In this document: positions 2,516-48,915 of the stretch, piece after piece
Numbering within the stretch: position 1 is the stretch's first letter
How the letters are laid out: every line of letters starts with the position of its first letter
Assembly: GCA_964057225.1 (NCBI GenBank)
Contig: OZ059894.1
Coordinates: 9,486,001 to 9,550,000 of the forward strand
Length of the DNA: 64,000 nucleotides
Source: Auanema rhodensis
Lineage: Eukaryota > Animalia > Nematoda
Direction: 5' to 3'
Made by a program: the position numbers and the translations under genes
Notes under the pieces: generated by a model
What the model was told of the DNA's origin: nothing
The model's database searches: none
The model's input: the letters and a program-made list of their open reading frames with translations, nothing else

Positions 2516-4864
2516 AAGTGTCATCTGATACGACAGGACATCTGTTGGAGGTTGAAGCTGATGCTCCGCACCAGTACCGAAATCGACGACAACTATGATT
2601 TTACATCTGATTCATGCAGCCTGTCATGCACAGCACACTATATTTGGCTTTGAATAGATTTCATGAGATGCAACCTCAATGAAAATAGGATGAAAACCTG
2701 TGGTTGCTTGTGAGATTGTGAGAGGCACAGAGATGAGACTGATGGATGGAGTCTCTCTCTCTCTCTCTAAACACACAGCGAAACTCAGACGGTCACGGCT
2801 CTCTGCTTGTTTTCTATGAGCACAAATCAAGCTGTTCTTGGGATGTGCACAAGTATTTCGGAACACATTGAGCATGAACATGTTCACTCCATCTATATTT
2901 CTTTCTTTTCTCAGCTCACATGATTGCTTGTCTTTGTGATATTTGAGAAAAAAACATCAAAAGGAATACATGCAGATGACATTTTCTCCATTCGTGAGCA
3001 ACTTGCCCTTCAGCATTATTCTAAAACTTACCGAAATGACAAAGGGATTGTTCTTCACTATGTCTTACAACGGTACCAATGATGATGCAATCCTCCTTTC
3101 TAACTGAAGGCACAACGTCCAATTTCTGTTCAGAAATTGAGCCTTGTAACATGAGTCACTCATTCAATTTGTATTTTTGCAACAACAAAGAAAAAAATAA
3201 GAAAGCATTATGATGTTATTTCTCTTAAATTCATTTTTCCTTTTCTCTTTTCATCTTCATCATCATTTTGGTGAGCTATCACTTACGCTTGTCGCCGCCA
3301 TTTCATCCATTCTCCAGGCTACATCTTTTTACCTCTCCATCTAACTTTCTCTATTTCTTGCTGTCCTCTCTTTCTACATTCTCATGATGTGCTGTCACCT
3401 ACGCTTTTTGCTTCATTTTCTCTTTACAATCACAGACAATCCTTTAGTGCTAACCCTACATGAGGTTAAAAGTGCTAATGGATCAGATGAATGATACCGT
3501 ATAGATATATAGAGATGGTTAAAAAGGGAGAAAGAGAGAAAGAGAGAGAAAGAGAGATAGAGGGAGAGAGAGAGACTTATACATATCTTTGTAGGAAGAA
3601 TATTGTTCAGATTATTGTTCAAAAATAAAAAAAAAGTTGTATTTCCTACTATTCATTCATTCTAATCTCTTCTGTATTATTTTGCATGAATCACATCTTT
3701 TGCAAATGCCAATTGAACATGAGGAAAGAGAAAGTATTCAGTTTTTATGACATTTGGCCTACAGTTTTTAGTGATAAAATTGTTGAAATGAAATAAAAAA
3801 AAAACAAAAAATCACTAGTTTATCATGTTTTACACATGATTTTTCAATTTTTTTTCTTACAAGTATGGATATTTTAATTAAAATGAATAAGAGTCAGTCA
3901 TTTCGAATTCTAATCGTCCAATTTTCCCCAGCACATTCTCACTATCCGACCAAAACACACACCCACTCAACTATTTTTCAAAACACACGTGAATAACGTG
4001 AAATCAGCATATTTTTATTATTTCATTTTGATTTCATAACAGGCTTAAAACGGTTGTTCTCTTATCTTCAAAACTAAACAATACAACAACAACAACAACA
4101 ACAAAACAAAACAACAAACTGTTTACACAAGTAATTTATATTGTTTATTTGATTAATAATAAAAATAAATAAAAATAGAACATTTTTGATATGAAAAATC
4201 TTCTTTAATATTCCCAAATATTATATTCTAATTATATAATAAATTTATTTATGCTAATGAGCTATAAATTTCACTTAATAGTTCATTTGTTCCGGCAAGA
4301 TGGCTTTCACACGCAAATAGTGCAAGCAGTTAATGAGCTGATTTTATTTCCAGAATGATTTAAAGACGTTAATGAAATTTTCCAATAATCCAAAATCTAT
4401 ATAAGAAGAGACAGACCACCCATTAGCTATTGAAATTACAAAAACAGTTATTCTCGTTTACATTTGACATTTGGAAAAAGATGATGACAGTCAAAAGAAT
4501 AGAAGAAGGTCAACATTGAAAGAGAGAAGAATATTTTCAATTCTGCCTTCACTGCCCCCCCCCACCCCCTCCAATCCTTTACTCTTCGACATTCATACCA
4601 AATACTGATACTTCTCTTTTTGGCTTAACAATTCTTTACTTTGTCTCAATACTAAGTGTCCATAAAGTTTTATTTATCTTTTACTTCATACGGGGCTACT
4701 CAAAATCAAACAACTTCTTATTTCAATTTTCACTTTTAACAATCTTAAATTAAAATCATTTTATCATATTATTCTATTTTGAAAAATATCTTGTTTGTTC
4801 AATGATTAACGTATATTACCTATGTTTATTTCATCTTCCATATCATATAATTACTATTTTCCCA

Positions 4865-4895
<31 letters not shown>

Positions 4896-5176
4896 ACCTC
4901 TCTCTCTATCTATCTTTTCAAATGAATCACACCCATTCTTGTAATCATCGATCAACAATCTGATAGACTTTACCAATTTTTACCCTTATTGACGTAAAAT
5001 TTATCTTTTGTAGTTTGAAGTTCTTAGGTTCTCCCGCCATTTAAAGACGAACGCGAGCCAGGCTCTCCGCATCTTCGAGATGTAATTTCCGTTTTTCCAT
5101 CCAAACTCTGTTGACCTATGGCGAGATACTAGCTGCCTGCTCTGATGCTTACCGGCTCCACGAGCACACTTGTCAT
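2516..5176 (-). CDS. Putative multi-exon gene of unknown function with alternative first exons; 3' part uncertain and may run to ~812 or off the window
   Basis: Two phase-0 ATG exons with strong donors: 5176-5153 (MTSVLVEP|gtaagc) and 3310/3301-3287 (MDE-MAATS|gtaagt). Both fit an open exon 3125-3032 (KLDVVPSVRKEDCIIIGTVVRHSEEQSLCHF|gtaagt), followed by a phase-matched open exon from 2592 (VVVDFGTGAEHQLQPPTDVLSYQMTL). No homolog recognised. Confidence 0.45.
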
Positions 5177-6658: not shown

Positions 6659-8150
6659 TAAGTTTCATCCAATTATAAGCTTTCCTTTCAAATCTTGCTT
6701 GTCCTTCTTTCTTTCTCTCCCTCTCACTCCTGCCGTGATATGTGTAGACTGCTGTACTGAGAAATGATATTCCCGTTAATTTTTTTTTGGAAATATCATG
6801 TTCCATCAGCAATCAAAGCTCGTGCTATCGATGATTATGCTCATCGTTCTGGTGTTTTTATCGTTTTTAAAACGTCGTAGTCATATTTTTATTTGATTGT
6901 AATTCATTATGATGATGCTCTCCTCTCCCCTCACTCATCAGAACCGTATTATTTGAAAATTCAGGATTCAAAATTCCTCTGTTGTTCCGCAAAACGCTGG
7001 TTTATGGATTTCAGAGAGGTAGATATGGCTTCTAGACCATATCTAGCATCCCATTACTTTTAGTATTTTATTTAATTTAATATTAAAATCTTCTAATATC
7101 AGAAAAAATGTTGAAGAACTAAGCTCCTTTCACCCCTAGTTTTGGCCCCCCGCCTCCCCCTTATGGTTTTGAAAATCTCCACCCCCTCAACATCAAGTCA
7201 TCTGACCCATGAACTATGTTTGTACATTGCCCATGATTGTGTTTTACACATATGATCATCATTCATTTGTCATTTTGATGAACATTTCTAACAATTTATC
7301 TTTTATTCAATCAATTTTTATCTTGAAAGTTCAATCAAAACTATTAAAATACAGCAGAATATGAAGATGCAGATCTACAAGATATTCAGTTTATTCTGAA
7401 ATGGTGGTCTATGCTGGTCATTCATGAATTGTTAACAACAAATTCTGAATATTTACGAATATGAGAGTGATCATAATGAGGAAACTTTAAAATTTATTGT
7501 TTAAACTTTGTTTAAACTTAACCTTTTGACATGTATTTGAATGAAAAATGAAGGTAATAAGGTGATTAAGCTATACGTTTGTTCTCTTGTTTGATGTCCT
7601 TCACATAGTATACATGATGAAATGCGGATATTGCTGACCAGTGTAATTAATTCTGGCCATCATCATCATCATCATCATCATCGTAGTACGTAAGTTCAAA
7701 TGAGTTGTTTAATTGAAAATTTGTGGTTTTTTCTTATATCAGACAACTGATTGTACATGTGATAGCTGACTAATAACAAACCAGCTGTTGCTGTTCGATC
7801 AACAACTGATAAAGTTGTTCGCAAAGATCACTACATTGAAGCAAAGCAAGTAGAGAAAAACGATATATAATGAAATGAAACTTATTTAATTGACCGGCAA
7901 ATTATAAGAAAATCATTCAATACACACAATATACACGATATATACATAGAAATATACATATATGTTAGAGATTTAGTAGCATATAATGCTGTTAAGTAAC
8001 GATGTTTCGAACTTGAAACTCTGAACATCACAGTTTTCTTCGAGAGGCGAGAGTGAATGTGTCCGAAAACAAGAAATTCATGCAGCTAATCGTTTGTCCT
8101 AATAGAAATCGGAAAGAAAAAACTAAGAAATAGGCAATTAAGGAAGAGTA

Positions 8151-9013
8151 TTAAGGAGCTACCAGTTGGCGATATAAGTGATATCGTATCCTCATCAATG
8201 GATCTTGTGTATTATCTATGGGAAATGGCAGACTATCGTCGTCTTTCCAACAGATATCCAATAATTCTTTTAAGTTATTTGCATTTCTCATCAATTCGCT
8301 TATAAGATGCCGAGTAAATAATACATGACCATATTGAGCTTGATGAGCGCGATACTTGTCACACAGGATCTGTTGATGCTTCCGACCACAGGCTGAACAG
8401 GCTGAACCGCAATTACGACTAGCATGCTTCGGGCCCAAACAACGCTGGCATAGACCCATGCTAGATAGACGTAGATATCGTTCTTCACCATTTTTATACA
8501 ATTCGCAGTCTTCTGAATGATGGACAGATGAGCAAAATAGACATCGACCATCAACCAAATGAATAATATGCTTCTGAAATGAGAAAGTACATGGTAACAT
8601 ATGATGATCAAACTATGACATACAACTACTCTTGACCAATGACGCATCAATTCTATAAACGTAATTGTTGTTGCCACAATACGTCGTCGAATTTCCGGAG
8701 TCGAAGTATCGTCGTGCCAAGCTTCAAATTTCGGATTTCCGGCATGATTAATCCAATAATCCTTAGCTTGATGAAGCTTGACTGTTTTCTTCCAAACTTC
8801 TTTCATTTGCCATCGAATATTCTTGATATCTTCGTTATAAACATCATCCAAATCAGAGCCTTTATACGAAAGATCATGATAAGTTAGATGCATATCAGAC
8901 AGCCATTTTGGAAAATTAACTGTTGACATGGTTGCTTCAAGATATTGATCCACTAATGGATCATCCCAAAAGTGTTCAGCCTTTAACGTTAATATTTCTG
9001 GAGGAATTGTCAT
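8151..9013 (-). CDS. Intron-containing protein with BEL/Pao-type Gag triple zinc knuckle (candidate domesticated gag), ~270 aa
   Basis: tttcag-ATG at 9013. Exon 1 9013-8624, a 50-nt GTATGT..TTTCAG intron (8623-8574), exon 2 from 8573 in frame. Contains CLFCSSVHHSEDC, CQRCLGPKHASRNC and CSACGRKHQQILC. The 3' end is either the stop at 8151 or a short extra exon (DKRLAA*). Confidence 0.8.
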
Positions 9014-11644
9014 CTGAAATATCATTCTAAAATATGGAAATTTGAAGTTACAACATCAATTGAAAGCTCAAAATAACAGAAAAAGAGGAAACCTATTGAA
9101 ATTCTAATAATTTTTAATTGAATTAAAAAAAAATAAAAATTCGAATATCCTGACGTATTTCACGTAAAATAACGTGTCAATTGGATTTAATTTTTAAATT
9201 TACGTGTGAATGACATGCATAATGGCCATATAGAATGGATGTGATAAGCCAAATAAGAATATTTTTCCTTTTTAGCAAAATAGTTATTTCTTTTATAAAA
9301 AATACTAAAAAAATAGAAAAAAAAGAGAAGATTATCAAATGAACAACTTGAAAAAGTATAAGAAAAATAAATATAGAAATAGAATATAATTTTCAAAAAT
9401 ATAGAATTAAGATTTAGAGAAAAAAAGAGAAAGAGAGAAAGAAAGAAAGAGAGAGAGAGAGAAAGAGAGAGAGAGAATGCAAAGGAATGTGAGAGTCGAA
9501 AGGAGGGAGGAAAGAAGGAAATAAATTAAATAATAAACATCCACTCTTCAAAAAGTCAATTTGTATCATTAAAATCAGGTCTATTATAATATTATGAAGC
9601 TCAAAACCAACTCATTATTCAGATTGGACAGACGTCTTTGTAGCTCATTTGGAGCCAAATATTTTCAGATTGTACTTTTTACTATAAAAGATCAAAAAAT
9701 GCAACAAAAGAAAAATAATATTATCAGACAATTCAGTTAAAAAGATTAATAATCAATAATATTTTCAAATGAGAGAAAGAAGATAAAAAAAATGAAATCC
9801 TTAAACAATAAAAGGAAGATTAGCAAAAACAGAAGAAAATGAGAAAACGAAAAAGGAGAATTAACATGAATGAGAGGGATCAATACCTATGGATATGTAT
9901 TATATCGAAATATTTTTATTTAAAAAAATAATATCTAAATCTAATATGCGATAAATTAAATTGAATTTACAACTAAATTGGCGAAATTTTAAATAAAAAA
10001 TTGTGGAAAAGCTTTAGCTTCAAGCATTTTTATGAGCGTAATATTGGTAATTAAATGGGAGAACTTTAAAAGATTTGACCAATTTTCGATAGAGGAAATA
10101 GAACGAGAGAAAACTGAAAGACCACCCTTAACGGAAATGATAAGCCTTGTTGAAGATATTTGGATTAAGCAATGTAGTGTCAGCTGTTCATTCAGAAGAA
10201 CAATCTAAGTCGTTATCCTGATGCCATCACGCTTGTGACTAATAGCTCACACATACGAACGCCACAATCAAAAATTGAAGTTTAAAAAAGAAGTTTTAAG
10301 ACTAAACATGGATGCAAACTCATGGGAAAAAATAATTTTTGTGAATTAATGAGAGAAATTAATGAAAAGGGGGTGATGACAGACGTGGCGCAAACATAAA
10401 TTTCTTGGAAAAAACAAAGAAAGTCCTTAATATTCTGAGAAACGAAAAAGCTAGATTAACAGATAGACACATACATATACACAGAGACAGACATAGACAT
10501 GCATAGGCACTTCATGGATTGAGCTTATACTTGATAAACTAATTGAATATGAACCTTGAAGGAATACGGCAATTCAATTATTTCATTTTAAGACTATTTT
10601 ACAACACAATGATAATACGTATCTAAGTTCAAACTAGAGGAGAGGATAAAACAAATGAATTTTCTGAATGACGAAACTGAATTTGGAGGAAATGTGGGTA
10701 CTTGGCTTGGATCTGTTAGAAGAAGAGAAAGAGAGCATGTAGAGAGCTATGAAAGCACTGAATACGAGCTCTGAAATGAAAAAGAGACTGCAAGATGTTG
10801 GAGGAAAAGCAGCAGAAGGAAGAAAGAGAGACGAGGAAAAGGGAAAAGAGAAGAAGAAGAAGAAGAAAAGGACAGCCGGCTGGTCATCTTCGAGATTTGT
10901 TCATTTTAAGAATATAAAAAATGTTTGTGATTATGTCTTGCACAGGCTTTTCACTTCAGCCTATATTTCAGTCAAAATATCTTACTTAACACATATGAAA
11001 AACATGCTTAAAACTGATTTTATAAGATAAAATATTAATAATTAGAATAATAAAATGCAGAATATGCTCATTTTAATGAATATATATCAAGTTTTAAAGT
11101 AAGTTAGAACATATAGTATGTATATATCAGCAACAAATCTATGTATCTCATTACGAGTTTTGGTGTTGAATTCAAGGTTCAGCTTATTCGCATGATTTCA
11201 ATCTCTAAATTACATTATAGTTTTATATAATTTGATTTCATATTAAGTACTTCGTATACATATAGTCAAATATAATTATAAAATCTTGTTTTCAAGTTTA
11301 AACTTTTGTTATACTAACTATATCCATAGTTATTCAGGTTATTCTAATGACCTTTTCTTCAATATTTAGATTCTGAGATGCTCTGCAATCAATTATTCAT
11401 ATAATTTTCTTAAAAGTTTCACATAAACCATGAAAACAATTGAAATTTTCTAAGAATTCCTATCTTTTCTTTTATTTTTCTTATAGAATCTAATTATAAT
11501 ATCATATCCTATATTCTAATTGGCACGTGCTACGTGGAATCACGTGATAATTGCCACGTGAAAACTGTAAAGTCGTACTTCTTGATCATTTTTTTTTTCA
11601 AATTTTTTAACTTAACTATATATAAATAGTATATATTACTAATT

Positions 11645-13522
11645 ATGTCTAAAACTCGAGCTTTTCGTGTTAATGCTAAAGGTTCAGAAGATACTGAGCT
11701 CATTATTTATCAATGTAATTGCTCTTTTAAACTTTTTTTTTCTGTTCGTAAAAAATAAATGAAATTGTTATAGGTGAACGACTTTGTGGGAAGGGAAATT
11801 TTTCAAGCGTCTTTCAAGCTCAGCTTATTAAGCCTGAACAAAGAGCAGTTGCAATTAAGAATATCTGGTAATTATAAATATATATATACATAATTCTATT
11901 TTATATAATATAAAATATAAAATTAGGAATACACTGAATAAGCAGACCCGACGAGCTGATGATGAAATTGAAATTCTAACTCAGATTCAACATGAGAATA
12001 TAGCTTCATTGTTGTATTACTTTTCAAAACGTGTTGATGAGGATGTGAGCATATCTTTCATCTTATCAAAACTTATCTGTTTCAAATCTTATTTCAGTGG
12101 ATTATCAGTTTAGTACTTGAATACTTACCGAATACTATGATGTGCTATCGAGATAGGAGGAATTATTTCAATAAAATTGATATTCAGGTACGGTTATTTG
12201 AAATTAGTTAGGCTATATTCTTAGATAATACTCGAATCTTGATTTTCTTGTGTCAGTTTACTCAAAGTAAGCAAAGTTTCAGTTGTACTCATGGCAAATT
12301 TTTACGGCTCTTAGCTATCTTCATGCCAAATCTATAGTTCATATGGATTTGAAGCCATCTAACATAGTTCTTGATCATAAGGTTTGTTCATTTCATAATA
12401 TTCATTAAACTAAAGTCATAATTCAAGCTAGGTATAGTTAAGCTAACTGATTTTGGTAGTTCAATCAACCTATCTTCCAACAGAATCCCCACTAATTGCT
12501 ATCAAGTAGTGCATTGAGCTGAGCGATATATATGTACATTCATATATACGTTTATCTCTCTCATAATCACACTTATTCTATTAAATTAAACAGGTTACCA
12601 GATACTACAGGCCACCAGAGCTTCTTTTTGGTTCTATATCCTTTACTTGTGCTATTGGTAATCTGTTTGAAATCTTTGAAATGAAGCTAAGCACCTGTTT
12701 TCGATGTGTTTTTTTTGCAGATCTATGGTCAGTTGCATGTGTTATTTACGAAATTATAACTAATCGAATCTTGTTCAAAGAAAGTACTACTGAAAAACAG
12801 GTAACATATATAATGTTTATATACAATGTTTTGAAAAAGTAAAACACTATTGTTATTATTATTACTATTTATAATAATAATTATAATTATCATCATCATC
12901 ATCATCATCAGCATTATCATCAGATCGAACTGATAACGGACATTTTTGGTTATCCAACTATTGAAGATATCAGAAATATGAAAATTAGTCGACCACGAAT
13001 TGCTCGACGAGACGGACGTGGAATTGATTTGGTTTGTGTTTCTTTCTGTCTGTTAGTCTGTCAGTCTCCCTCTCTCTCTCTCTCTCTCTCCCCTTTCTCT
13101 CTCTCTTTCTATATACATATATTCATTAATCTATATTATATTTAATAAAAAATAACTATATTTCAAATATAAAAGAGAAAATTTCAGTTTATAGCTAATT
13201 CTGTGAGTGCTGATGAATTGCTTTTCTTGAAAACATTTCTATTTCTTGATCCTTTACGTCGAGCTTTTGCTTCAGCAGCTCTTGACAATGAATTTTTTAG
13301 ATATTTGATTGAGGTTTGTTGCACATAATTACTATATTTCTCTTTTTCTATATATATATATATATAGATATAGAAAACTATATTTATATAACTATATGTA
13401 TATAAATAATAATAATATTATTATTTTTGCTTTAGAATTATGATAATCCTGACATAACTGTGCGAATAATACCAGACTTTGTGAAAGTACAATTGGAAAT
13501 AAAAAAAAACGAAAAGAAATAA
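11645..13522 (+). CDS. GSK-3-like Ser/Thr kinase of the nematode gskl type (non-RD), ~11 exons
   Basis: Spliced translation gives GKGNFSSVF, VAIKNIW, HMDLKPSN (12340-), DFG, YQVTRYYRPPELLFG and DLWSVACV. Stop at 13520-13522 if the last exon is not spliced onward. Absent from the ORF track because the exons are short. Confidence 0.85.
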
Positions 13523-14390: not shown

Positions 14391-15992
14391 CTATTCTACT
14401 ATTGTCCCCTCGCCCATCCACCTCTTCATGAACGTTTGATGCTGGTAATGCTGAAATGTATGATGCCAATAGAAATGATGTGCACGTATGTTGTACATGA
14501 ATGATATATGCTGTAGTTCTGTATGTATGTATATGCTATTTCTCTGCTTCTTTGTCCTCCTCGATGAACGGTGCTGATGTGAACTGTCGCGGGTGAAGTG
14601 GTCGAAGAGGTGCTGGAAATGGACGAAGTGAAATGAATGCTTTTCTGATGACATTTTAGTAAGTTAGTCATTGACATGTGTTATAAGAATGAACAAGTAG
14701 CTTTAATAGAGAAATATAGAGAAGATAGGCATAGAGAGCCAGTGCATTCGATTGTATGTTAGAAGAAGAAGAGAGAGAGAGAAAACCCTACCTAAAGAGG
14801 GAGAGAAAGAGAGAGAATAAAGAAGAGAAAGAAGAAAAAGAGGAAGCTAAAAGAAACTTGTCTGATGTGATGTGCTTGTTTGCTGTTGTTTTCGTCCGCC
14901 ATAGTCCATCGATGTCCAGGAAGAGACAGACAGTCAATTGTGGAAGAGACAGACAGTCAGCCGAACTGTGCTTCACATGGCATACCAGTTGCAACTGCAA
15001 TTGAACAGAAAGATTAAGCTAGTCAATAGGCCCAGAAGAAAGAGATTGTTACTCTATCTAAGCGTATTTTTTGATTTTTTTTTCTGTTTTTCTATTCATA
15101 TTTCATTGCCAATATCTGCAATTGTCTTTTTCCCTATTCCTCATTTGGTTACCCCTCATAGCATTCTTCTTAATAAATGTTTTTTCTTTGAATCAATTCT
15201 CTTTACCAATCGTTATTTGATCTTTTGTTTGTAAATATTCACAATTTCAATTTGTTTTTCACTAAAATCTGTTCCGTCTGACATTACAAGAGAACAAACT
15301 ACTAAGCATTTCCTATTATTACTAAACCATTTCATTTTTCCTTTTTTTTTTGTTTCTTTTTTGATTATTTTTAATGTTAAATATTCAATTTTATTCATTT
15401 CTCTCACAACTTTCTATAAATACATTTGGTCTTCAACTTATTGTTCTCAGCTCATATTTTTCTTTTAAAAAAACAAATAACATCCCATCATCCCATCATC
15501 CCCCCCCCGCCCCCTGCTTCAATAATGACAATAAGTTTTCATTAATATTATTTTAATTTTTATTCTTTTATTTCTCAAATTAAATAAGAAAAACTAGTTA
15601 AAAGAGATTTTGTCTCTGTGTGTATGTGTAATTGTTTCCGTTGAAAGAGAAAGTATAACTTTTGGCAACATTTTCCTATTTCATATCTTTAAATTTGATC
15701 CTTATCTACTATATGTATTTCTTTTTCTAACTCTTTATTTGCAAAAAGAAACTAGTTTTTACTATATATGGAAAGAAGTTAAATAAGGTTCTTAAGCTAG
15801 ATAACATCCAACTAATTTCTCTCTTTTTCTTTCTCTCTCTAACTCTCTCTCTCTCTATCTTTATATATACATTCATCTTTATCTCTCTCTCTCTTTCTCT
15901 CTCAGTGTCTTAGTACGATATTCGTATACCGACAATCCCCCCCCTCTTCTACTATAACCCCAACCCAACGCTAGAATATACTTCTATATTCC

Positions 15993-16027
<35 letters not shown>

Positions 16028-19000
16028 ATCTTCCTCTTCCTTGTACTCGGATTTTCTCTGAATTTCCTTTCTATTTTAATAATTTTTATTCTGCTTACTT
16101 CTCCTCGTTTATCTATTTCCTCATTCCTTTCCTCTTCGTTTCAAAGCTCTTCCTCTTACGTGTGCTGCCATTACTTTCTCTCACCTGCTAAATCTTATAT
16201 TTCCTCATCTAGTTGTCTATTATTTTCATGAATTTGCTATTTTATGCTCGCAAAAACTGCTTCACAACTAAACTCTATCTCTCATTTCGACTTTATTTTA
16301 TCTTTTTTCATCCATTCTGATTGCAAACTATCATGACATCATTATTTGGAAAAAATAGAACTAGGGGATGGCCTTTATCTCTTCCTCTCTCTCTCTCTCT
16401 CTTTCTTTTTTTCCAAAAATCATTGTTGTCGTGCATAGCAGTGAGGGAAAACCGGGTATAATTCCACGGATTTTCATATGAATGATGGTCACAACATCAA
16501 ATTGGCGGCAGGCAAGCGTCCATCCAGCTTTGTTGTCATCAAATCCGGACCATTTTCGGATGTTTTGTGTTACTTTAGCTTTCGTTTACGTATAGTTTGT
16601 TCAGACAACGTTCTTTCTAATTCTTTCCAAGCATGTATTGTGGAATTTTGCAGAGTAATTTTGCAATAGATTGAAATAGATTGTAATCGAGTCAAAAAGC
16701 GGAGCTTATGCCTTCATCCTCTTCAGCAAAAACTTCTGATTTTTAATTTTTTTTCTTCTAAAATTCTTTGTAAAAACATGAACATGTCGAAATATGAACC
16801 CATTTTATACTATATAACCTGTAAAATCATTAAATAACGCTTTTCCAATTAGGGGTTTAGTCATTCTTCTGCTATTTCTCTCTCCCCCCCCCCCTTCTGT
16901 CATGTTTTCTTCCCTGTCTACCAATCTATCTACCAAGTGTTTTTTTTAGAAGAAAACGAAAAAAAACAAAAAAATTGCAAAGGCAATAAGCTAAAAAGAT
17001 CGAAAAACGCTACCACATGTTCTTCTCAGTTCATTTCGTCTCATTTTAAAATTTGGTCACTTATTTTGTAACAGCACGTTTAACAAGTTTGTGGGCTGAT
17101 GTACTACTGGAGCACCCAAGCCTACAATTTTCGGTTCCAATGAAATGATTCTGAACATTTAATTTTTTTTTCATCAAAGATAACAATCTGCGTCTAATAG
17201 TTCAGAGTTTTTTCAACAAATCTTGGTGATGACGCCAGAGGACGGGAAAGACTAGTGATTCTTCATGAAATATAAAAAATTTTGTTCCTTCATTTCTTAT
17301 TCAAAACGTATTTGCTTTCACATTTTTATATAAAAATATATATTTATCTATGTGAATGCTGTACTTTCTTTAATTTCACCATAATTTGTTGCAATTAGAA
17401 CTTTGTTCAATGATTTTCCTCTCCAAATATAGATCATATTCAAAAAAAATGCGCTTGAAAGCTTTTTTGCGTTCTCTTCCTTCCGCCTTCTCGTACTATT
17501 CGTTTTCGCTCTCAGTTTTTTTTGTGAGTATGTATGAGTGTGGGACCAAACTTCGATTAAAACGTTATTTGTTGAAAAGTTCTATATTTCAATATCTTAA
17601 AGTCGCTTTTACTCACCATCTACTTGTCTTACCATCGTTCTCACCTTCCAATTCTCATATTCCCATTCTATATACTATCTTTGTTATGCTATATCTCCTT
17701 CTGTAGTCCCCTTGTCGCACTCTAAATCCAGAGAGAATCAAACAAGAGAGAGAGTATATATATTTTCTTTCTTCCTCCATTTTTTTTGAAATGGAAAAGA
17801 AAATAGTATAAAGCAAAACACTGTTTTAAACATAATTATACAGTACAATTGTCCTTTCATAGCATAAAAAGCTGATAACTGAACCTTTCTATTCATATTT
17901 CTGAACATATAATCAGCTCAATTTATGAATTTATTTCTATTTTATGCAATAAATACATATATTTCTGTATACACATTTGTTTTTGTCATCTATCCCTTTA
18001 ACATTCTCTTACTTTTCATTTAAAATTTTTAAAGTTCTTCTGTGTAATTTTTAAAAGTGTTCCACATCAGCCTACCGACTTATTTCTGTTCACAAATCGT
18101 CATTATGTTGATTCTCTACTTTACTCTTCTAGTCTATCTATTCACCTTCATCTTTCTTTCTATCTCTCTCTCTTTTTCTTTCTCGTATTAATACTCTCTG
18201 TTCTAAAATCTCCTTCTCTCTTTGTTGATCTCTCTGATGCTTTCTACTCGTTTCAACCAATCGTAATGGGTGGTGAAACCTGTTCACCTGGTGCCCAAGC
18301 CGAGCCATCCTTTCTTCCATAAATACCATCAAATCGACAGTTTTGTAAGATTTAATGTCTGAAAATTCACGGCTAACATCTCAAGTTGGCTAATATCATG
18401 GATTTCAGCTTTTCGCAATTATCGAAATCTCATCCCCTACTTCTTCTGTCCATACAAATTCGTGCGAAATCACCTCAGCGATTCCACAATCTGCTTACCT
18501 CCTGCCGATCTGAAAAGTTATTGCAAATATGATTTATATAGTCTCGCTACTATTTCGTTCAAAAATTTTCATTTTAACGGCCAATCAAGAAAAAAAAATT
18601 CTGCTTATCGTGTCAACACGAGCGTATTGTATGGTCTCACATTCATGTGTTTTTTCTCGAGTTTTCTAGCAAATGCCAACTTTCACGGGAAAAACTGCTC
18701 TCAAATGAAATATTACAGCATTTAATTTTTTTTTTATTAAATATTTTACAGATTATTAAATATATAAAATTTTGTCAAAAAAAAAATAAAGATATAAGAT
18801 TTTAACATTACACTATTACAGCTGATTAAAAAACAAGAAAGCCATTGGTCAAATGGGCGTCGTTTGTTTGTTTTGTGGTCAAAAAACAAGATTTTTCGTT
18901 TTTTTCTTTTAAATAATTTTGTCGTTCCTAGCCACACTGACACTGCTGATAGTTGTAAAATTTTCTACTGAAAAAATCGTTTAAAATTCATATCTTTAAG

Positions 19001-20028
19001 ACTTTATTACGACTAATTTTGATTGAACTGATGCGATATATTATATTTTCATTCATTCATCTCTTTTCTATTTCGTTTGTTTTGGAATTTTTTTTATATG
19101 ATAGAAGATTTGAAAAGTTTAAAGCAATTGAAAATGAAATAAATGATCAACCGGTCACTGCGTGAAGAAAAAGTAAAATAAAAACGTGTAATGGTATTCA
19201 CGTAAACTTCCACGTCACGTATCCGCGTGGGCATCTGGGTTGCACCACCAGTATTACTGGCTTGCCAATAGAAAAAAGTGATGATATTTCAGAAAGTATT
19301 ACAGTTATGAATGACTAATGAGTTTATGTGATGATGAAATAAAGGAAATTGCGAAACAAAAACTTAAATATGGCTTAATGTCACATTCATATGACTGAAA
19401 TGGCTTGTATAACTATATTAAAAGTTTGAATAACATTCCAATGTCTCTATACATTCATTTTTCTGAGATAAAGCCAGAAATTCTTCTATTTTCTGACTCT
19501 ATTCACTGCTTTATTCGTCGGCTTTCATGAAAATAATATGCTTATTCAATAAATTTTAAGAACAATTGAATGCCCAAAAAGTGGTTTTCTACTTTAGCTA
19601 GCAATGTACTTGCATAATACTTTACATATTTTATTTCATTTTTACAAATTTAGGGCTTTTTTTGTTTTCAGACCAAGGTTCTTTCTCCCAACTTCTTGTT
19701 AGCATCAACGCAGTAAAGTAGCCATTCTGGATTTAAAGTAAACGAACTACTACTATCTCTTCATACTCAGCATTATCTTTCTCTTTTCTCTTCAATTTTT
19801 GAAACTCAAAAAGATATTTCTATTTTTCTTTTTAGTATTCTGACATATTTTATTCAAATAACTTTAAGCTCAATTAGATTTTAAAGTAAAAAATACATTT
19901 ATTTTGTTTATTATAGAAAAGGTCATGAATGTTGGTATAGATGAACATACATTTGTCATATTTCTATTACCTATTTCTTCTACTTACCTCACTCTTCTCT
20001 CTCTCTTCTCTTTCTTTCTCTCTTTCTT

Positions 20029-20082
<54 letters not shown>

Positions 20083-20391
20083 TGTTAAATCTTTGTATAT
20101 ACATATCAATCCTACCCCCCCCGCTCCCTCAAACAGAGCCAGAGCTTCTTGTTGACGTCGTTTAGTAATTTGAATTTGACCAAACTTGTCTTGTATAGAA
20201 ACAAGCAAGTATGACCTCGACGATAATTCTTGTCTCGTCATTCTTGCTGAATCATTAAGCTGAGACGAGAGATTTGAAGTAGCAAATATTGAACAAGAAA
20301 AGCTTATAAATTCGATTCTGTTCAACTCATATGACCTTCGATGGCAACCCCCGATAAGGTCTTCAATAGCTGTGGTAGCGACAGCCGCCAT
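14391..20391 (-). CDS. Putative ~122-aa protein of unknown function built with 11-nt and 9-nt microexons
   Basis: Exons 20391-20336, 18509-18499 (ttttcag|ATCGGCAGGAG|gtaagc), 18358-18288, 14994-14986 (ttgcag|TTGCAACTG|gtatgc), 14612-14391 are all phase-compatible: MAAVATTAIEDLIGGCHRRSAGDIKSYKTVDLMVFMEERMARLGHQLQLHLFDHFTRDSSHQHRSSRRTKKQ... There is also a 42-nt 5'UTR intron at 20452-20411 (gtaagt..ttcag). Confidence 0.5.
14919..14959. repeat. 18-nt direct repeat GGAAGAGACAGACAGTCA x2 (14919-14936, 14942-14959)
   Basis: Exact duplicate read directly. On the minus strand it is UGACUGUCUGUCUCUUCC, just downstream of the 9-nt microexon donor. Confidence 0.9.
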
Positions 20392-33124: not shown

Positions 33125-35058
33125 GAGAGAAAGAGAGAGAGAGAAAGAAGGGGAGAGAGATTGAAGAAATAGAAAACAAACTTTGATTTTTCTTAGAAAA
33201 TTGACCATTCATGGTAGTGTAGTGAGTAATGATGAAGTCAATAATTGAAGGCCAAAATAAATTATATTAAAGCTAACACGTTAAAATACGGATTTCCTTT
33301 GTTTTTCTTTGAAAAAAAGAAATTTTTTCTCCAAAATTCAGCATTTTCATACAATGTGAAAGCGATGGTGTAAATGAAAACTAAGGCTTGTTGAGATAAT
33401 GAAATGAAAAGGATTGTCGGAAAGCGAAGAGAAAAGAAGGAAACGATTCTTATTACATCAAATACTATTCTCAAAAGCTGTTCAACCTAATGATGCTGTT
33501 TCTAAGTAAGACAAATACATAAATATTGAGAATTCTTAAGCTGTATAAGGTTTTTTGGAAAAAAAAGTTTGTTGAGAAACTTTTTGAAACAGCATAAAAA
33601 ATAAGTTGAATAGCTTTCATGAGAAGAACAAAGAAACCAAATGAAGCTGGAACGAGAGCTATTTCGGCAATTGTATTTTCCTAAATTAGAAACACAAAAT
33701 CAAGAAATATTATATAAATATATAAATATATAAATATATATATATATAACTATATGTATATATTTTCTATTATAGTTGTGAAAAGAGAGAAGAAAAGAAG
33801 TAAAATATTCATTGTCGAAGTGCCAACTGAATTTTCTTGATAATTTATTTTTTTCGCTCGAAATGAGGTAATAATTAGCTTCTAACTTTCTAATAATATT
33901 CAATGACGCACTTCCAAGTGAAGTATTAAAATTTTGTTTTGTTTTTCTTTTCAAATATGAAGAAAATATTTAAGAAATTTGTATAAATTGACGAAAATTT
34001 AAAATCAAAATGTCAAACATGTTGGCAGCATGAGAGGGGATAAGATCTAGAATGTCAGGAAGACAACAACGCTCTTCAACTGCTTAAGCATCAATTCAAA
34101 AGCAATTTAAAAAAAAAAGTTCGAGAGTAGAATGAGCTTAAAAGATTGAATTTTTTAAACTATAAAGGAAAACTAGCTACGACGACAATATTTCCGAATA
34201 AGGTAAGCTGGTTAGCATCACAAGTTAGCCACTGAAGTTTGTGCTGTTCTCAGTTTCAGGAAGAAACATGGTTACTTCTCGCATCTTCGGATAAACTGCT
34301 CACTCATACTTTCAGTCTACTTGCTTCTCTGTTCTGTGCTTGTTCTCCATCACTCCTCCCTCTCTTTTTGTTTCTTTCTCTGTGTCTCTACTTCTCTCAC
34401 TAGTTTGCTCATTCTTTTCTCATTCACGTTTTCCTCCACCTCAACTTATTTCCAACTTCTTTATGCTCTCTGCTTCTTAATTTTTTTTCTCCAAAAGAGC
34501 AGCTAAGACATTGAATATTGAATCTGGTGCACCGGCAATTATGTATAATCGTCAAGCAGTATCCTTTGAGATGGGAAATAAATATTGTTAGCATGATTCG
34601 AAAATTATTTCCGGCAGACGTGCTGTAAATACAGCTCCCAGATTAGAAGAACAAGCACAAAAAAGAAATGAACGAATATTCCGGAATAAACTTAATGGTT
34701 AAGGGCAGACAGCATTATATCAAACCATTCCAGACGTTTTTCATTCATTCTTCTTCTTCTTTTCTTCTTCTTTTTCTTTTCTTCTTCTTGTTCTTGAATG
34801 CTTAGAGAGATACAAAGTAATGTTGTCTTGAAGAACTAAAGTGTCTTCAAAGAGAATGCATGCTAGTACTAGAATAGCTCTCTTTCATTCAAAACAGGAA
34901 ACTGAGATGCTGGAAGTATAAGGACCAAAAGGAAGAGCGTTTTGCATGAGACACGTGGCACTGGAAATGTTGCTTCATGTTAGAAGCATGCTCATCAGAG
35001 TCTAACTAAACTAAGCAGATAAAATAAAAGACTGAAACTTAGAAAGATAGATATGAAT

Positions 35059-35060
<2 letters not shown>

Positions 35061-35130
<70 letters not shown>
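35061..35130. repeat. (AG)n microsatellite, ~35 units; the longest of many CT/GA tracts (others e.g. 665-692, 16002-16027, 20036-20078, 33082-33145)
   Basis: Read directly from the sequence. Confidence 0.97.
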
Positions 35131-35136
<6 letters not shown>

Positions 35137-38100
35137 GGGGGAGGGGGAGAAAAAAAAGAAAGAAGAAGTAATAAAAACTTTATTTCAATAAAGGATATTA
35201 AGGTGTTATTACGAAGTAGCCAGGTAACAAGATGATGATGGATTCCCAAAAGCTATTTAGGATATATGCAGTTGAAATGAGGCTGTATTCATTTGGAATT
35301 CTATTGTTCGTCAGTTCTACACTACCCTCCCCCCCAACTCTTTAAGTTGTCCTCCTCTCCCTCCCCCTCGACCACTGTCTAGCTACAACAACGATTTTCA
35401 TGCTATTTTAGTTGTGTCTTCTTCTATTCAAAATATAATATTAATGAATAGATAACTATTATTAAATAATAATATGAATTAACTATATATTTAAAAAAAA
35501 TTTCTTTCTATAATCCATAAGAGACAAAAATAGAAGAAAAAAACATTTTAGAAAAATATACGTAGAAAACAAACATAAATAATAGAAAAATATACATAAA
35601 TGTGAGAACAGAAGTATCATGAAATAACCGGAAAAAGAAAAAAAGAGGATAGCTTGGAACAATGTCTTCGCATATGACAGGCAAAAGCCTGTGTCTCATT
35701 GAAAGTAAATATTAGCTAGAAGTAACATATCCAATTAGATATTTATTTCCTGAACATGAAACCTTGAATAAGAATTTTATGGAATTTGCTCAATGTTCGT
35801 ATAGAATCTACAATAAGTTTTCAGATTAAACTTTTAATAAACTAAGTAAATCTCTCTTTCTATCTTTCCTTTGCTATCTTTCCCTTCTTATCTTCCCCAC
35901 CTTATCTTTTCCTCTTTCTCTCTCTTATACTTTATATAAACAACCGTGTTTTGTACGAAATATTGTAAAAATAAAAATTTTGAACTTACACGTGTAGTCT
36001 CTCACGTGAACTACAATCAAGTCAATATGCAAATTAAGCATTTATTTTAAAGAATAAAAAACAACCAAATGAAATACAGAATAGCATAATAAAGCATTTT
36101 TGGAATAGAAGAGTATAAGAGTTAAGATATTCGATGCGAGTCACGTTGGCAAAGCCAAATGGTCAAAATGGAAGAACAGGAAATCGACATAGAACAAAGC
36201 TATTCATCAGGAAGCAAGACCTATAATCCCGTTCAGCATATATCATTCTGATGTCTGAAACCTCTGCACTTCTACATTCACATAAGCCATTTTCTAATAT
36301 TAAAGTTTAAAAAGAAAGTTCGACGAAAATAGGGAAAGTAGAGTATGAACTGATTGAATTAGGCTTCAATTCACTCATGGCAATCATTTTCAAAACTAAA
36401 CAATCATTCGACTTATAAAATATTATTAATGGAATATTTGGATTAAGAAAATGAGTTTTAATAAAGATAATCTGATATATTTATATTTAAATTTATGATA
36501 AAATACATGATGAATAGATAGATGTCAGTATACAAGCCACAGAATATCCATAAGATGTGAAGCTGAAGCTAAGATGAAGATGATGCTCATTTGGTGAGCA
36601 TCGTGAAAAGACACATTTTTCAGATATTGCTTTGAAATGAGCAATTGTATACATCGTTTCCTTGACATTTCTATTATATATAAGTCCATTTTTTGCTTTT
36701 TGTCCTGTATTTCACACCCGCTTAAATGCTTTTCCCTTCTCTTCTCTTCTCATTCTCTTTCAAATAATGAAACCAATACTAAATTACAAGAAAAAACATT
36801 TGAAATTATTGAAGTGCAATATGTGTTTCAGAGGAAAAAAAGGCAAAAAAATCAAGAATCAAAGGAAATACAGCATTACATCTTATAGCCAATTACGTTA
36901 ATTTTGGCAAATCATGCAAGTTTCTAATACAATTTCAAATGATTTCAAGTCGATATAGACAGAAAGAAAAGTTGCAAGAACTTGACACTATAGATCATTT
37001 CAGAGAAAAGAAAAATTTTTTCTCTTTTTTTCCTTTTTTTTGAAGGAATTCTTGGAGCGAAATTGGAAAAAAAAGCAAAACAACATGAATGGTGATGATG
37101 CTGAGTAATAGAAAACTCTCAGAATCTGATATGAGACATGGATATGGATGATTGCCTATGATGCATTATATGAATGTGTTGTACTTGTTCAGTTTTCTTA
37201 TTGGTTTGTTTCTTTTGAGAAAAAAAAACGAAAAAAAATTAATCAGCTTTAAAGGAAAAAAACATACGCAAGGAAGGAAATTATCTAATTTAAGTAAAAA
37301 CTTCAGTTTCTCTCAGAATGTTGTAGAATGTGTAGAAGAATAAGAAGAAATAGAGAAAACGATGAGCTTCATGATGGTTGGGCTACTCAATGAAATTCCC
37401 AAGAGTAAAGTCTTCAAGAGCGTATGTTTACGCTAATCTGGCAGAATATGCCCATTTTAGAGGCAATCATGATATATAAGCTGAAAAAGAGAACAATAAA
37501 ACAAATATTATTACATATTTAATATTTAATATAAAATATAAAATATTTTTTACCTTTGAGGTAAATGAAAAAAAAGGAAGAACATGAATTCTTGTCTAAA
37601 TTCTTTTAATTTTTTTCTCAAAAATATGTAAAATAGTTATAACTTCAAGTAGAATTTCGGAAGAAATGGAATAGCACTGAGAAGAAAAACGCTGGCTACT
37701 GCTGCAACTCGTACTCGAAAGATGGATAAATCATATAATATATTGAGTTCAATTGCTCAACTGCTGACGTCAAACATCAAATGCTAGCTGTCAAACGATT
37801 TGTACTACAACTAGAAAATCTTATGAGAGAATCATGAATTATCAAATGAAATATAAGAAATATTGTCATTCTGTATAATATCAATGAAATTAGAAATTAT
37901 TTCCTTGTTTTCAAATTGTTCCTTCTTACCTTTCTGTCAATGTTTTTGTTTTTAAATCTTTTTCTTTTTCGATTAATCATTTCAAATATCTGCCATTTTC
38001 TCAAAATCTTTTGCTCTAAGGGAGTGAGATAGTTGAAAGGTGAACATTCAATGTTTTTTCCAATTTCTTTTGGAGAATTTCGTCAGATTCTCTAGAAACT

Positions 38101-39534: not shown

Positions 39535-40821
39535 TTAATTTGATGGCAAAGCTGAAGCAAATCCTATTCTCTTTTGCTTGATATCATAGACTTGGCAGTA
39601 AGATCTCATCCAAGTATCTCCTAAGATCCAAGATGGCCCAAATCCAGCAGCACCCATAGAGAAGAAACTAATCACACATCGGCCATTTCCCAATCCAAGA
39701 TCGAGAACGTATTCTTTGGGTAAAACTTCATATCTTTGTCCATTGAAAGTGAAGAAAAGTGGTGGAAGAGATGACATCTGATCGCAAGGAACAGTATAGA
39801 CTTCGTTCAGTTTGTCGAGGGTAGCTTTGGTTTGAGCAACAACGCTCTTGAAAACAGATTCAGGGCATCCGAGCCATGACGTACCGGTGTCAGAGATAGC
39901 CTGAGTTTTCTTAGCGGTAATGAAATCTCCAATTTGGAAGGCATCCATGGGGAACTGCCAGTAGGTCTCACTCGAGAGAGCAACATATTGAATATTGAAG
40001 TCACAGTGAGCGTTATCGAATCCTCCATAGGTAATTAAGCCTCCGTCAGCTTGGTTAGCAGAGCCACCACGATGAGCCATGAAGACTGTGAAGATTTGTT
40101 GATCAAGGCTAGGTAAAAGGTTTTGCATTGGTGGTACGACTTTATCTACAGCTAAAGCTGGCCATCCGAGTCCCATGATTCCATCCATTGGTTGGTATCC
40201 GATTGTGGAGTCAACATGAGTAGCAACTCCAAACTCTTGATTCTTGACAGAGAGACCGCCGAGAGAGAGATTATCTAATCCAAGATATCCCTTGCATGAT
40301 CCAGCCTTATAGCGAATTGTGAAAGTTCTAGACTCCTTCACGAAAGTAGATGATTGACCAGTGTTAAACTTCTTCTTTTTGTAGTTGGAAGCAGCAAAAC
40401 CATTACAAGCAGAGGTATTACAATCAGCATCAATAACCCAAAGGTTGGATGATCCAGTATCAGGAACGATAGTGAAGGTTTGAGCTGAAGACATTATAGA
40501 TGAGAAGTGAGTATCAAAGTGGCGTAGTTTTTACCTGGAGTTCCAAGAGTAATGTTGGCAAGATAGAAGTCATCGGAGTAATCGATGAAATGCTGATTTC
40601 CGACTTGAGGGTCAACTTGGAGTCGAGCAAGATGCTTTTGAGCAAGATATTCATTGTATATTCCTTCCCTAAATCACAATTATTAATATTCAACTTAGTT
40701 ATTATATAAATTACTTAATCATTCTGGCCATCCTGGAACCAGTGCTCCTAGTTTCCATCTTAACGACTGCAGCTTGAGCTGCTGACAGACCGAGCAAAAG
40801 TATAACGAATAAACTTCTCAT
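39535..40821 (-). CDS. Secreted pepsin-family (A1) aspartic protease, asp-1-like, 3 exons
   Basis: Signal peptide MRSLFVILLLGLSAAQA, propeptide, FIDYSDDFYLANITLGTP|AQTF, catalytic DTGSSNLWV and DTGTS, WILGD and RIGFA. Confidence 0.95.
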
Positions 40822-45161: not shown

Positions 45162-48100
45162 ATGATCACGGTATGAACATCATTCATAATATTTTTCATG
45201 TTGTGGTTTATTTTGGTCAAAAATCATTGATTGATATCAGTATGTGCATGCTTTTGACTCACTTATCTCGTTCTCTCTTATCTGTTTCTCTCTCGCGCGT
45301 GCGCCCTAAATCTCTTCCAACTTTTTTTTTTAATTTAAGCATGCTCATCTAACAACTTCAAAAAGCATATTTCATCAGTGATTTAATGCTTTATCCATAA
45401 TTAATATGAAATTTTCTTTTTTTTAGCTGTTGCTGATTAGCCTGTTGAGCTTGATTCCATGCTCAATCGCAGTCGATACGAACACGTTACAGGTGCAAGT
45501 AGGAGATGAAGATGCTTTCGGTAAGGACTCTGATTTGCATCTTTGAGAATGGAATGAACCTTTGAAATGACTTTGCGTGTGCATGAGCTTTTCTAACTGT
45601 TTTTCCGACTTTCTGACCGCTGTAGCTTCTCTGACTCTTTCCATAATAGTATCCTCCTCCTCTATCCTTTCGCAGTATGTTCGCAAAGTTTTTCCAAATG
45701 TAAAAAACATTTTCTCCTTTTTTGGCGAAAAATTAGAATAAGAACGTAGGCTCGCAGGGAGAACTATGGCGCTCGTGTGATGAAGTACCGTGTATTAGGA
45801 ATTTCGTCTGTGTGATGAGAAAGCTTACATGTCTAAGCGATCAATGCTCCAACATATCACCATTACCACTCTGTGTTCCTGGAGATCCACGTATATACAT
45901 TAGCTTCTGTTGATCACAAATTCTTATTTTCAATTTGCTTTCAGAACATAACTGTGCGTTTGTAACATGTGTCGATGGTTTCAAATGCATTCATGTGGAA
46001 AATGAATGTGATACTACTCCATGTCTGCCACAACCAAAATGCGTAGCATTTGAGTAAGTGGAAGAAGCCTTTTCACGAATTACAGTTTCATGTTCATCAG
46101 CAGTTCTGCTAATGAACCGTTAATGAAACTTGAATGAAACTTGAGTAGAAATGAAAACGATCACGACAACGTGGATTGCGTTGCAAACGATACTGACATT
46201 CTTTCAGTTTTCAAATCTTACTTTCAAGTTTTGATATTTTAATCCTAATTTCGTTTACAGGGCCTTAACTGATAAAGTTGAACAAGTCACTTCAAGCCCT
46301 AGTTCACAAGAAGATTCGGATAAACCCCGACCTCTTAGTGATAGTAGTATTCAACACTTACATATTCCTCTCCCACCAGGAAGTCGCTTTTTTCAACTTT
46401 ACATGTAGTAACTTGTCCGAATTTAGCAAAACGTCCACCTAAACCAGAAATAGATACATCACTTCCAGCAAGAACACAAATATTCCAAATAAAGGATACT
46501 AAGAGCAGGCGACAACCAAGTTCTATACAACCTGGTATACACTTGTTCAAATCTTCGCAACATAAAATTCTTTATAGTTACAACTACGTCTCCTACACCA
46601 GCTCCAAAAACCTCTGCCAAGACGATAGCATTGGAAAGGTCCGTCAAAACCACTAAACAACCTGAACGGTTAACAACACATACCTCTCCAATTACTCGTA
46701 TTCCTTCTCGTCCTATCTTGTCCCGTGCTGGAAGAATTCACCCTCACCCAACGCATAAAAACTCTAGCAAACCTATTGAGAAAGTACCAAGAAAAGTTTT
46801 ACAACCACATTTGTCAACCACAACATCAAAACCTGTTGACCCACAACCTCAACATCCTCTAAATCAAAAGATTGTGGATCATAGAGAAGCCCGCAGAGGA
46901 TCTCTACGACTACCTAAACCTATTGTTGAGCCTATAAGTCAATTTAGTACACAACATTTGACTGAAAGAGCAAGACCACGTCCTCAGCAACCGGAAAAAC
47001 CTTTCAATCCCATACCTACTTCATCACCTTCTATGGCTGAAGCTCCAGTGGATGAGGCACTCCCAGCTAATATACAAGCTTCGCGAGCTGTGAGCTTCAT
47101 ATTCTTGGATGCTAGACCTGAAGTCATCAGTGCTATTGGAGATTATGCCTGTATGTTATAACTCTACCATCTAGTAATATTATGGTTATAAACTGAATGT
47201 TCACATTTATAGATAGAAATCGTGTACATCGACGTGGCGGTAGCTTCTCTCGTCAACGATACATCACCCGTACGTCAAGAACTGAATCATTTATTTTTAA
47301 AATCAGCCAAAACTTTCAGAAGATCCTTGTGCCAGCGTATTATGCGGAGAAAACCAACGATGTGAAGTATGTCAAAGAATCTATGACAAAGCATAATCCT
47401 CTACCTCTATTCTAGGCAATCTCAGATACAGCAGCTATGTGTGCTTCAGTACCAATATCCGCTTCAAATCGAGCTGTTCCTCAATTATCGTACGAAAAAT
47501 TAAAATTTGAAATTAAACTGAATTCGAAATATTCTAGGCAAATTGTGAGTCCATGGGCAATACAACCACCAACTAAAGGAATAAACAGTAAGTACTTGAA
47601 AAAATTTTATTTGAATCAAGTCTTTAAATGACGAAAATACGTGAAAAACATGAATTGCAACTTTAATTTCAAAGAAAAAATGGAATAAAAACGTTTGAAT
47701 TCTGATTTTCAAAAAGAAAACCTGAATTTGAAATGAAAACATTAGTTATATTTCATTCTTCAGATTTGAACAACTTTGTTTCTGGAGCTGTTAATAGTGT
47801 CCAAGGATATATCTCGCAAATCGAGTGCATTTTTACAGGAAAATGTCTTTCGGGTATCTATATAGGTTAAACCTATAAAATAATTTTTAACTATCCTTTA
47901 AAGATTATCAAACAACTACAAACTATCCTCGTCCCCCTACTACAACTACGACAACACAAAGGTTTTACTACATTTAATCCTGTTTGTTTTATTGTTTTTC
48001 TCAAAGGTATATTACTATTACTACTACTCGAGCACCTACAACTAGATCTTATGTAACGAGACATCCTTGTGATTCCATATACTGTATAAACGGTTTCTGT

Positions 48101-48589
48101 GCAATTAGAAATGGACGTGCTCAATGTGTTCCAGGTAATATAATGGAATTCTATATAGCAAAAGCCAATATATAGTTAGAAGATGCTTTGAAATAGCGGT
48201 ATTTTTATTTAGATTATATCACAGAAACTGCGAGACCAACGACATTATGGCCAACTCGCCCCGCAACAACAGCCACGACAACCACAACGACCACAACGAC
48301 TACAACGACAACAACTCCTCCAGCAGCCCCAAAATGTGGACCGTTTGAAGAGCTAAGCACATGCGGAAAAAACTGTGAAGTTACTTGTACAGATGTGAAA
48401 ACGGTATCAACTAGGCACAAGCTATAGATCCCTCTATATTTCAATTTTTAGGGATGTGTACCACAATGTGGAACCGTGCAAGAATGCATCTGCATGCCCG
48501 GATTCTATCGTTTTGCTGATTTCTGTGTCCGCTCTGCTCTCTGCCCTGTAAATCCATTCGGAAGAGCTATTCCTTTACCAGGAAAGTGA
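45162..48589 (+). CDS. Secreted mucin-like protein with follistatin-N-like Cys repeats, Pro/Thr-rich tracts and a C-terminal TIL domain
   Basis: MIT|LLLISLLSLIPCSIA signal peptide. Cys modules CDEVPCIRNFVC, CAFVTCVDGFKC..CDTTPCLPQPKCV, DPCASVLCGENQRCE, HPCDSIYCINGFC. Poly-Thr at ~48265-48315. Ten-Cys TIL CGPFEELSTCGKNCEVTC..CVPQC..CICMPGFYR..CVRSALC. Some internal junctions unresolved. Confidence 0.8.
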
Positions 48590-48831: not shown

Positions 48832-48915
48832 TGTCATCCGCAGGATTCGAACCTGCGCCCTCCGGAGAGGACTGCGACCTGAACGCAGCGCCTTAGACCA
48901 CTCGGCCAGAATGAC
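48832..48915 (-). tRNA. tRNA-Leu(CAG)
   Basis: GTCATTCTGGCCGAGTGGTCTAAGGCGCTGCGTTCAGGTCGCAGTCCTCTCCGGAGGGCGCAGGTTCGAATCCTGCGGATGACA: cloverleaf with long variable arm, A/B boxes, and a downstream TTTT terminator. Confidence 0.98.

Follow-up and report, generated by a model that had tools for sequence, protein, structure and literature searches.

A locus of 863 bp on the minus strand of a 64-kb stretch of nematode DNA (hereafter the window) has an open reading frame that ends in three zinc knuckles of the type found in the Gag proteins of BEL/Pao retrotransposons, followed by a short tail. The question it raises is whether this is a host gene built from a piece of gag or what a retrotransposon insertion has left behind. 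Gag-built host genes rank among the important cases of molecular domestication. Almost all of these genes, such as Arc, PNMA and RTL, derive from Ty3/Gypsy elements and have retained the capsid, and the known co-opted gag genes have often lost the nucleocapsid (NC). In a published survey the fungal gene Crtg14 is the single co-option of a Bel-Pao gag, and none is reported there from animals (PMC8321522).

Gene structure and coding evidence

The locus (8151-9013, minus strand) extends from an ATG at 9013 to a TAA at 8151..8153 and can be read as two exons. Exon 1 (8624..9013) consists of the ATG and 129 further codons, 130 in all, and encodes an N-terminal region without detectable relatives. 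A predicted spliceosomal intron of 50 nt (8574..8623; GTATGT...TTTCAG, 68% A+T) separates it from the coding part of exon 2 (8154..8573), whose 140 codons specify the knuckle module and a C-terminal tail of 69 aa. Translation of the joined exons gives a product of 270 aa with a single, terminal stop, in agreement with the intact frame claimed in an earlier note on this DNA. The intron (8623-8574) lies 10 residues ahead of the knuckle module, and exon 2 is essentially an NC domain with a tail. Directly 5' of the ATG stands the hexamer TTTCAG (9014..9019, minus strand) that the earlier note had pointed out as acceptor-like; its presence can be read from the sequence, and its role as a trans- or cis-splice acceptor is putative. 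The same hexamer occurs 88 times in the window and 44 times in shuffles, a twofold difference. Within 400 nt 3' of the stop codon there is no AATAAA, and ATTAAA at 7885..7890 (minus strand), the sole such hexamer over this distance, is a weak candidate for a poly(A) signal.

The 50-nt host-type intron that had been proposed restores the frame and, judged by its letters and position, looks genuine. The two strands of the window (128 kb) together contain five matches to the strict pattern GTRNGT-N30-55-TTTCAG, 47-58 nt long, and most of these have open frames alongside, as real introns of the short nematode type should. Of the five, only that at 8623-8574 has at least 50 open codons on each side. 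Its length is the modal 50 nt and, being 2 mod 3, joins two open frames exactly; from the density of the pattern in the window, the chance of finding it at this spot is about 1e-3. To our knowledge the gag genes of LTR retrotransposons normally have no spliceosomal introns, and the intron therefore argues for a resident, non-mobile copy.

The two open segments measure 251 and 153 codons from stop to stop, the second and fourth longest in the window. When the locus was shuffled with a first-order Markov model, at least 130 open codons were obtained in 0.9% of trials and at least 251 in none of 5000. A codon log-likelihood score, for which 1274 codons from host exons of the window served as the training set, was highest in the proposed frame (0.11 for exon 1 and -0.03 for exon 2, versus -0.35 to -0.60 off frame), and these in-frame values fall at the low end of those for host exons (0.05-0.48).

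The frames overlap. The frame of exon 1 stays open through the intron and for 90 codons into exon 2 (8303-9055, minus strand; 251 codons in total), and intron retention would thus yield a product of 241 aa without knuckles and would not run into an early stop codon. Within the intron, an ATG at 8600 opens a knuckle-only ORF of 149 aa (8151-8600, minus strand). Going by these frames, unspliced products are also possible.

A triple CCHC module with BEL/Pao spacing

The module occupies 8361..8543 on the minus strand, corresponding to protein residues 141-201, and was located by regular expression, HMMER, tblastn, profile comparison and alignment. Knuckle 1 (8543-8505) reads CLFCSSVHHSEDC and has the form CX2CX3HX4C, knuckle 2 (8450-8409) reads CQRCLGPKHASRNC and has the form CX2CX4HX4C, and knuckle 3 (8399-8361) reads CSACGRKHQQILC and again has the form CX2CX3HX4C. 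The first two are separated by a spacer of 18 aa, ELYKNGEERYLRLSSMGL, and the last two by the three residues GSA. This is exactly the three-knuckle spacing that had been described, and a search of all six frames of the 64 kb with the expression CX2CX3-4HX4C returned these three motifs only.

A triple Cys-His box is the hallmark of Pao/BEL Gag, with published spacings of CX2CX3-4HX4C, CX2CX2-4HX4-5C and CX2-4CX3HX4C/H (PMC554778), and the three knuckles of the window conform to them. In an alignment of 31 module sequences, every invariant or near-invariant column (14 columns) is present in the window protein. All twelve zinc ligands are kept, nine Cys and three His in three CCHC knuckles, as are the two conserved non-ligand positions, an Arg in the spacer and the Leu after the second Cys of knuckle 2. 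Knuckle 1 has the conserved aromatic residue (C-L-F-C). The HH doublet is absent from the third knuckle, which reads KHQQ at this point and so has HQ; the doublet is frequent in BEL/Pao Gag, not universal, is missing from Pao and Sinbad themselves, and is not a defining feature (PMC554778).

Relationship to BEL/Pao Gag

The two exons were searched separately, exon 1 by word index and exon 2 also by an exhaustive HMMER search of 1.84 billion sequences (E<=1e-3). With exon 2 as query, 134 proteins were recovered, the best at E 3.5e-11, and all of these except one (P0105) align solely to exon-2 residues ~8-80, the knuckle module. Many matches are short (100-400 aa), and gag-only fragments dominate the list. 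The matches that can be named come from Panagrellus redivivus, Caenorhabditis nigoni, Bursaphelenchus xylophilus, Aphelenchus avenae and Panagrolaimus, some of them labelled 'Pao retrotransposon peptidase family protein' or 'Gag protein'. Eight top matches were scanned against Pfam (E<=0.001). DUF1759 was present in six of them and no Pfam domain in the other two. The full order, with DUF1759, the knuckles, DUF1758, RVT_1, Peptidase_A17, integrase, DUF5641 and a phlebovirus-G2-like env, was seen in two of the eight; one more has DUF1759 together with a DUF1758 protease, and the remaining carriers of DUF1759 have this domain only. Taken together, the scanned and the named matches are mostly Gag-Pol(-Env) polyproteins of nematode BEL/Pao elements.

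Profile and translated searches gave the same result. A local profile was built from 39 Gag regions, each taken from the N-terminus to the end of the knuckles; in the spliced protein it aligns to residues 138-209 (E 5e-27). When nine BEL/Pao polyproteins were compared with the whole window by tblastn, 8250-8576 alone was matched (E 5e-14). Module identity to BEL/Pao is 24-40% in the 31-row alignment and reaches 48% for one search match. Against PDB, the module profile matches EIAV Gag (6t61, E 5e-5) and HIV-1 NCp7 (~3e-4), with the EIAV and HIV-1 NC matches ranging from 5e-5 to 1e-3, and more weakly Air2 (~3e-3) and Lin28 (0.02). Several general searches were silent: zf-CCHC (PF00098) had no Pfam match in either exon at E<=10, neither exon had a Pfam or NCBIfam match above chance level, a word-index protein search returned nothing for exon 1 or exon 2 (the unspliced ORFs served as carriers to widen its length windows), and phmmer against PDB returned nothing for either. 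From the similarity of the module, the kept columns and the published spacing we conclude, on sequence comparison, that the module is a BEL/Pao nucleocapsid domain and is most like those of nematode elements. The identification of a BEL/Pao Gag triple knuckle that had been made by eye is thus borne out, by homology (best E 3.5e-11), by profile (5e-27) and by spacing as published (PMC554778).

Some of the matches have features of their own. Two to four tandem triple-knuckle modules are found in P0001, P0002, P0009, P0022 and P0040; P0002 (439 aa) has three copies of the module, no DUF1759 and no Pfam domain at all. The contig context of P0002 and P0003 was uninformative. An 'UNVERIFIED_CONTAM' flag (Armadillidium vulgare assembly) is attached to P0022 and to P0263, the NCBI-named member of the cluster of P0009. 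In P0004 and P0008 (C. nigoni CAO4377336.1) a BEL/Pao Gag-Pol is fused to a fusion glycoprotein of Phlebovirus G2 type (Pfam E 1e-84 to 1e-88), and proteins of this type represent env-bearing nematode BEL/Pao elements.

Regions outside the knuckle module

The earlier note had spoken of a gag gene, and for the NC module this is correct; a capsid or DUF1759 region, by Pfam, HMM and hhalign, is not found, and the recognisable part is NC only. The 137 residues before the knuckles have no detectable similarity to DUF1759 or capsid by Pfam, by the Gag profile or by hhalign. DUF1759 (PF03564) was not detected in exon 1 at a Pfam threshold of E<=10, and hhalign of exon 1 alone against Gag gave E 0.39 at a probability of 0.15%. 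In the scanned matches the distance from the end of DUF1759 to the knuckles is usually 70-85 aa (153 aa in P0001). An upstream exon with DUF1759 was considered and rejected, as no six-frame segment of the window upstream of the ATG matches the Gag profile, and 'HFWDD' near the N-terminus, considered as the FW motif of DUF1759, was unsupported by any alignment method. Neither exon 1 nor the 69-aa tail (8154..8360) has any likeness among the 142 proteins that were fetched. P0105, considered as a relative of the C-terminal tail, is a tandem-repeat protein in which weak matches add up, and was rejected as an artefact.

Structure prediction places its confidence in the knuckles. AlphaFold2 drew exon 1, without an alignment, entirely as helices at a pLDDT of 41, too low to judge the fold. 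For exon 2, with the 31-row alignment, the knuckle module reaches pLDDT 87-94, with a short helix in the 18-aa spacer; the long helix predicted for the C-terminal tail is less confident (pLDDT 55-76). Helices are therefore drawn in both of the flanks that had been called helical-looking, and pLDDT values of 41 on the N-terminal and 55-76 on the C-terminal side lend this description weak support. When the confident exon-2 model was compared with PDB and BFVD by Foldseek, no structure reached an E-value under 0.1, and the top rows, all insignificant, were knuckles of Lin28 and of lentiviral (HIV) NC.

Genomic surroundings

The tblastn comparison with nine BEL/Pao polyproteins found no remnant of protease, RT, RNase H, integrase or env in the window, and the Gag profile agrees. 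LTRs and terminal inverted repeats are absent, self-blastn of the 64 kb giving no match of at least 60 nt, and a second copy of the locus is absent within the window. The earlier statement that no protease, RT or integrase ORF and no LTR lies nearby can thus be extended to all 64 kb. Pfam-checked ORFs elsewhere in the window belong to host genes, for a protein kinase, a two-pore K+ channel, a C-type lectin, an M16 peptidase and a protein with calponin repeats, of which the nearest is ~3 kb from the locus. The locus lies between two plus-strand genes, one for an acidic secreted protein (about 5.85-6.7 kb) and the protein-kinase gene (about 11.8-12.9 kb). The region is gene-rich and repeat-poor with host neighbours, and the description of the locus as a stand-alone gene fits it well.

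The only repeats detected in the window are (GA)n/(CT)n microsatellites, at 635-735, 4845-4941, 9403-9520, 13029-13130, 15806-16050, 19993-20114 and 34998-35252. The one at 9403-9520 lies ~400 nt upstream of the ATG.

Origin of the gene and alternative explanations

On balance we think it probable that the locus is a fixed, non-mobile, intron-bearing gene of two exons that derives from a captured fragment of a BEL/Pao gag and encodes a nucleic-acid-binding protein of NC type. The first exon and the C-terminal tail would on this account be either unrelated to Gag or diverged beyond recognition, and the captured transposon part may be the knuckle-bearing exon 2. Most likely a piece of gag was captured at the locus, or stayed behind there, and would since have been spliced and expressed like a host gene. 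By analogy with retroviral and retrotransposon NC, each knuckle would bind one Zn2+, and the three Zn2+-CCHC knuckles together would hold on to single-stranded RNA or DNA; partner binding or self-association may be a function of the helical flanks. The locus holds an intact ORF of which the NC part alone is demonstrably derived from Gag, and it has no means of transposition. 'Domesticated gag' is accordingly only partly supported as a name, and we regard the locus as a well-defined candidate for domestication, not a demonstrated case. The roles suggested for it earlier, in transposon defence or germline RNA binding, are speculation.

The locus could instead be a dead relic of a BEL/Pao gag. 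The insertion would have been truncated, or the rest of it deleted, and the remaining piece would be young enough to be open still, yet unexpressed and without use, with an intron-like stretch of 50 nt by coincidence. Such a relic would explain why the only recognisable part is a transposon domain and why there is no canonical poly(A) signal, and short gag-only fragments do dominate the list of matches. It would also agree with the failure to find an orthologue or paralogue in the protein collections or in a metagenome scan; the source species and its near relatives are absent from the databases searched, and therefore the absence of orthologues says nothing on the age of the gene. An old relic, bare of pol and LTR traces, should however not keep 14 NC columns and 270 open codons at 31-37% G+C, and a young one should have element sequence around it, of which none is present. 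Nor would a relic be expected to have a strict intron pattern, found five times in 128 kb, in phase exactly where the frames switch, or an exon 1 that is open and codon-biased in frame and yet not Gag-like. We consider this origin unlikely.

Membership in a multi-copy mobile or selfish family appears distinctly improbable. The locus would then be a non-autonomous gag-only element, or a fragment carried in another transposon, with ends too short or too diverged to see. The occurrence of 2-4 tandem triple-knuckle modules in several matches, with P0002 lacking any Pfam domain, speaks for such families, but no terminal direct or inverted repeats flank this locus, no second copy is present in the 64 kb, and the gene has a host-type intron. 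Least probable of all, to the point that we give it very little weight, is that there is no intron, and that two overlapping ORFs are expressed separately (241 aa from 9025, and the 149-aa knuckle ORF from 8600) or an ancestral ORF was frameshifted between 8612 and 8574. Both frames are indeed open across 8303-8612 and each has an ATG; against this, a GTATGT...TTTCAG of the modal 50 nt compensates the frame exactly, with a chance of about 1e-3.

Comparison with known systems

With the Gag proteins of BEL/Pao elements (Belpaoviridae), for example Sinbad, Pao, C. nigoni CAO4377336.1 and Aphelenchus avenae KAH7714691.1, the window protein shares the same spacing of three CCHC knuckles, and its module keeps the Arg of the spacer and the Leu that follows the second Cys of knuckle 2. 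Unlike BEL/Pao elements, the window gene has no upstream DUF1759, no downstream protease, RT or integrase and no LTRs; unlike a BEL/Pao gag, it has a host-type intron just before the module; and its third knuckle has HQ in place of the HH doublet frequent in that group. Like the co-opted gag genes Arc, PNMA, RTL/SIRH, SCAN and Crtg14, it is a stand-alone, intact ORF without pol or LTRs. It differs from known co-opted gags in that NC alone is recognisable, and its source would be an animal BEL/Pao element. HIV-1 NCp7, EIAV NCp11, Lin28 and Air2 likely share a mechanism with it, to judge by the knuckle motif, namely zinc-dependent binding of single-stranded nucleic acid. Whereas retroviral NC and the cellular binders have two adjacent knuckles, the window module has three, with a helical spacer of 18 aa.

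A bolder proposal, which we put forward as a long shot, is that this is the first co-option of a BEL/Pao gag in animals and one of NC only, in which the triple knuckle was fused to new helical exons and now serves as an RNA binder in the germline or a small-RNA pathway, or as a decoy that acts against the packaging of BEL/Pao genomes. In its decoy version, which falls under the same low expectation, the protein would be a restriction factor comparable to Fv1 or enJS56A1, directed against resident BEL/Pao elements. If true, an NC-only animal gene derived from BEL/Pao would widen the picture of Gag domestication and provide a tractable nematode case for the role of a captured nucleocapsid, be it RNA chaperoning or transposon restriction. 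The novelty, if the case were proven, would be modest, given that the survey has no BEL/Pao co-option in animals (PMC8321522), and it is tempered by how commonly gag-only fragments of BEL/Pao elements turn up in nematode protein predictions.

Other features of the window

Four further features were noted in the window. At 39535-40494 (minus strand) an uninterrupted exon of 319 codons encodes a pepsin-like (A1) aspartic protease with at most 62% identity to its ASP-1-like counterparts in Auanema, strongylids and Caenorhabditis. These matches place the source among the rhabditid (clade V) nematodes; an exact look-up of the protease had no record, and the proteins encoded in the window are absent from the collections. 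An open segment of 222 codons at 46493-47158 (plus strand), rich in Pro, Thr and Ser, and a poly-Thr stretch at 48197-48424 (plus strand) both have the low-complexity look of mucin-type proteins. The sole Rfam/ARAGORN match in the window is a tRNA-Leu(CAG) at 48832-48915 on the minus strand.
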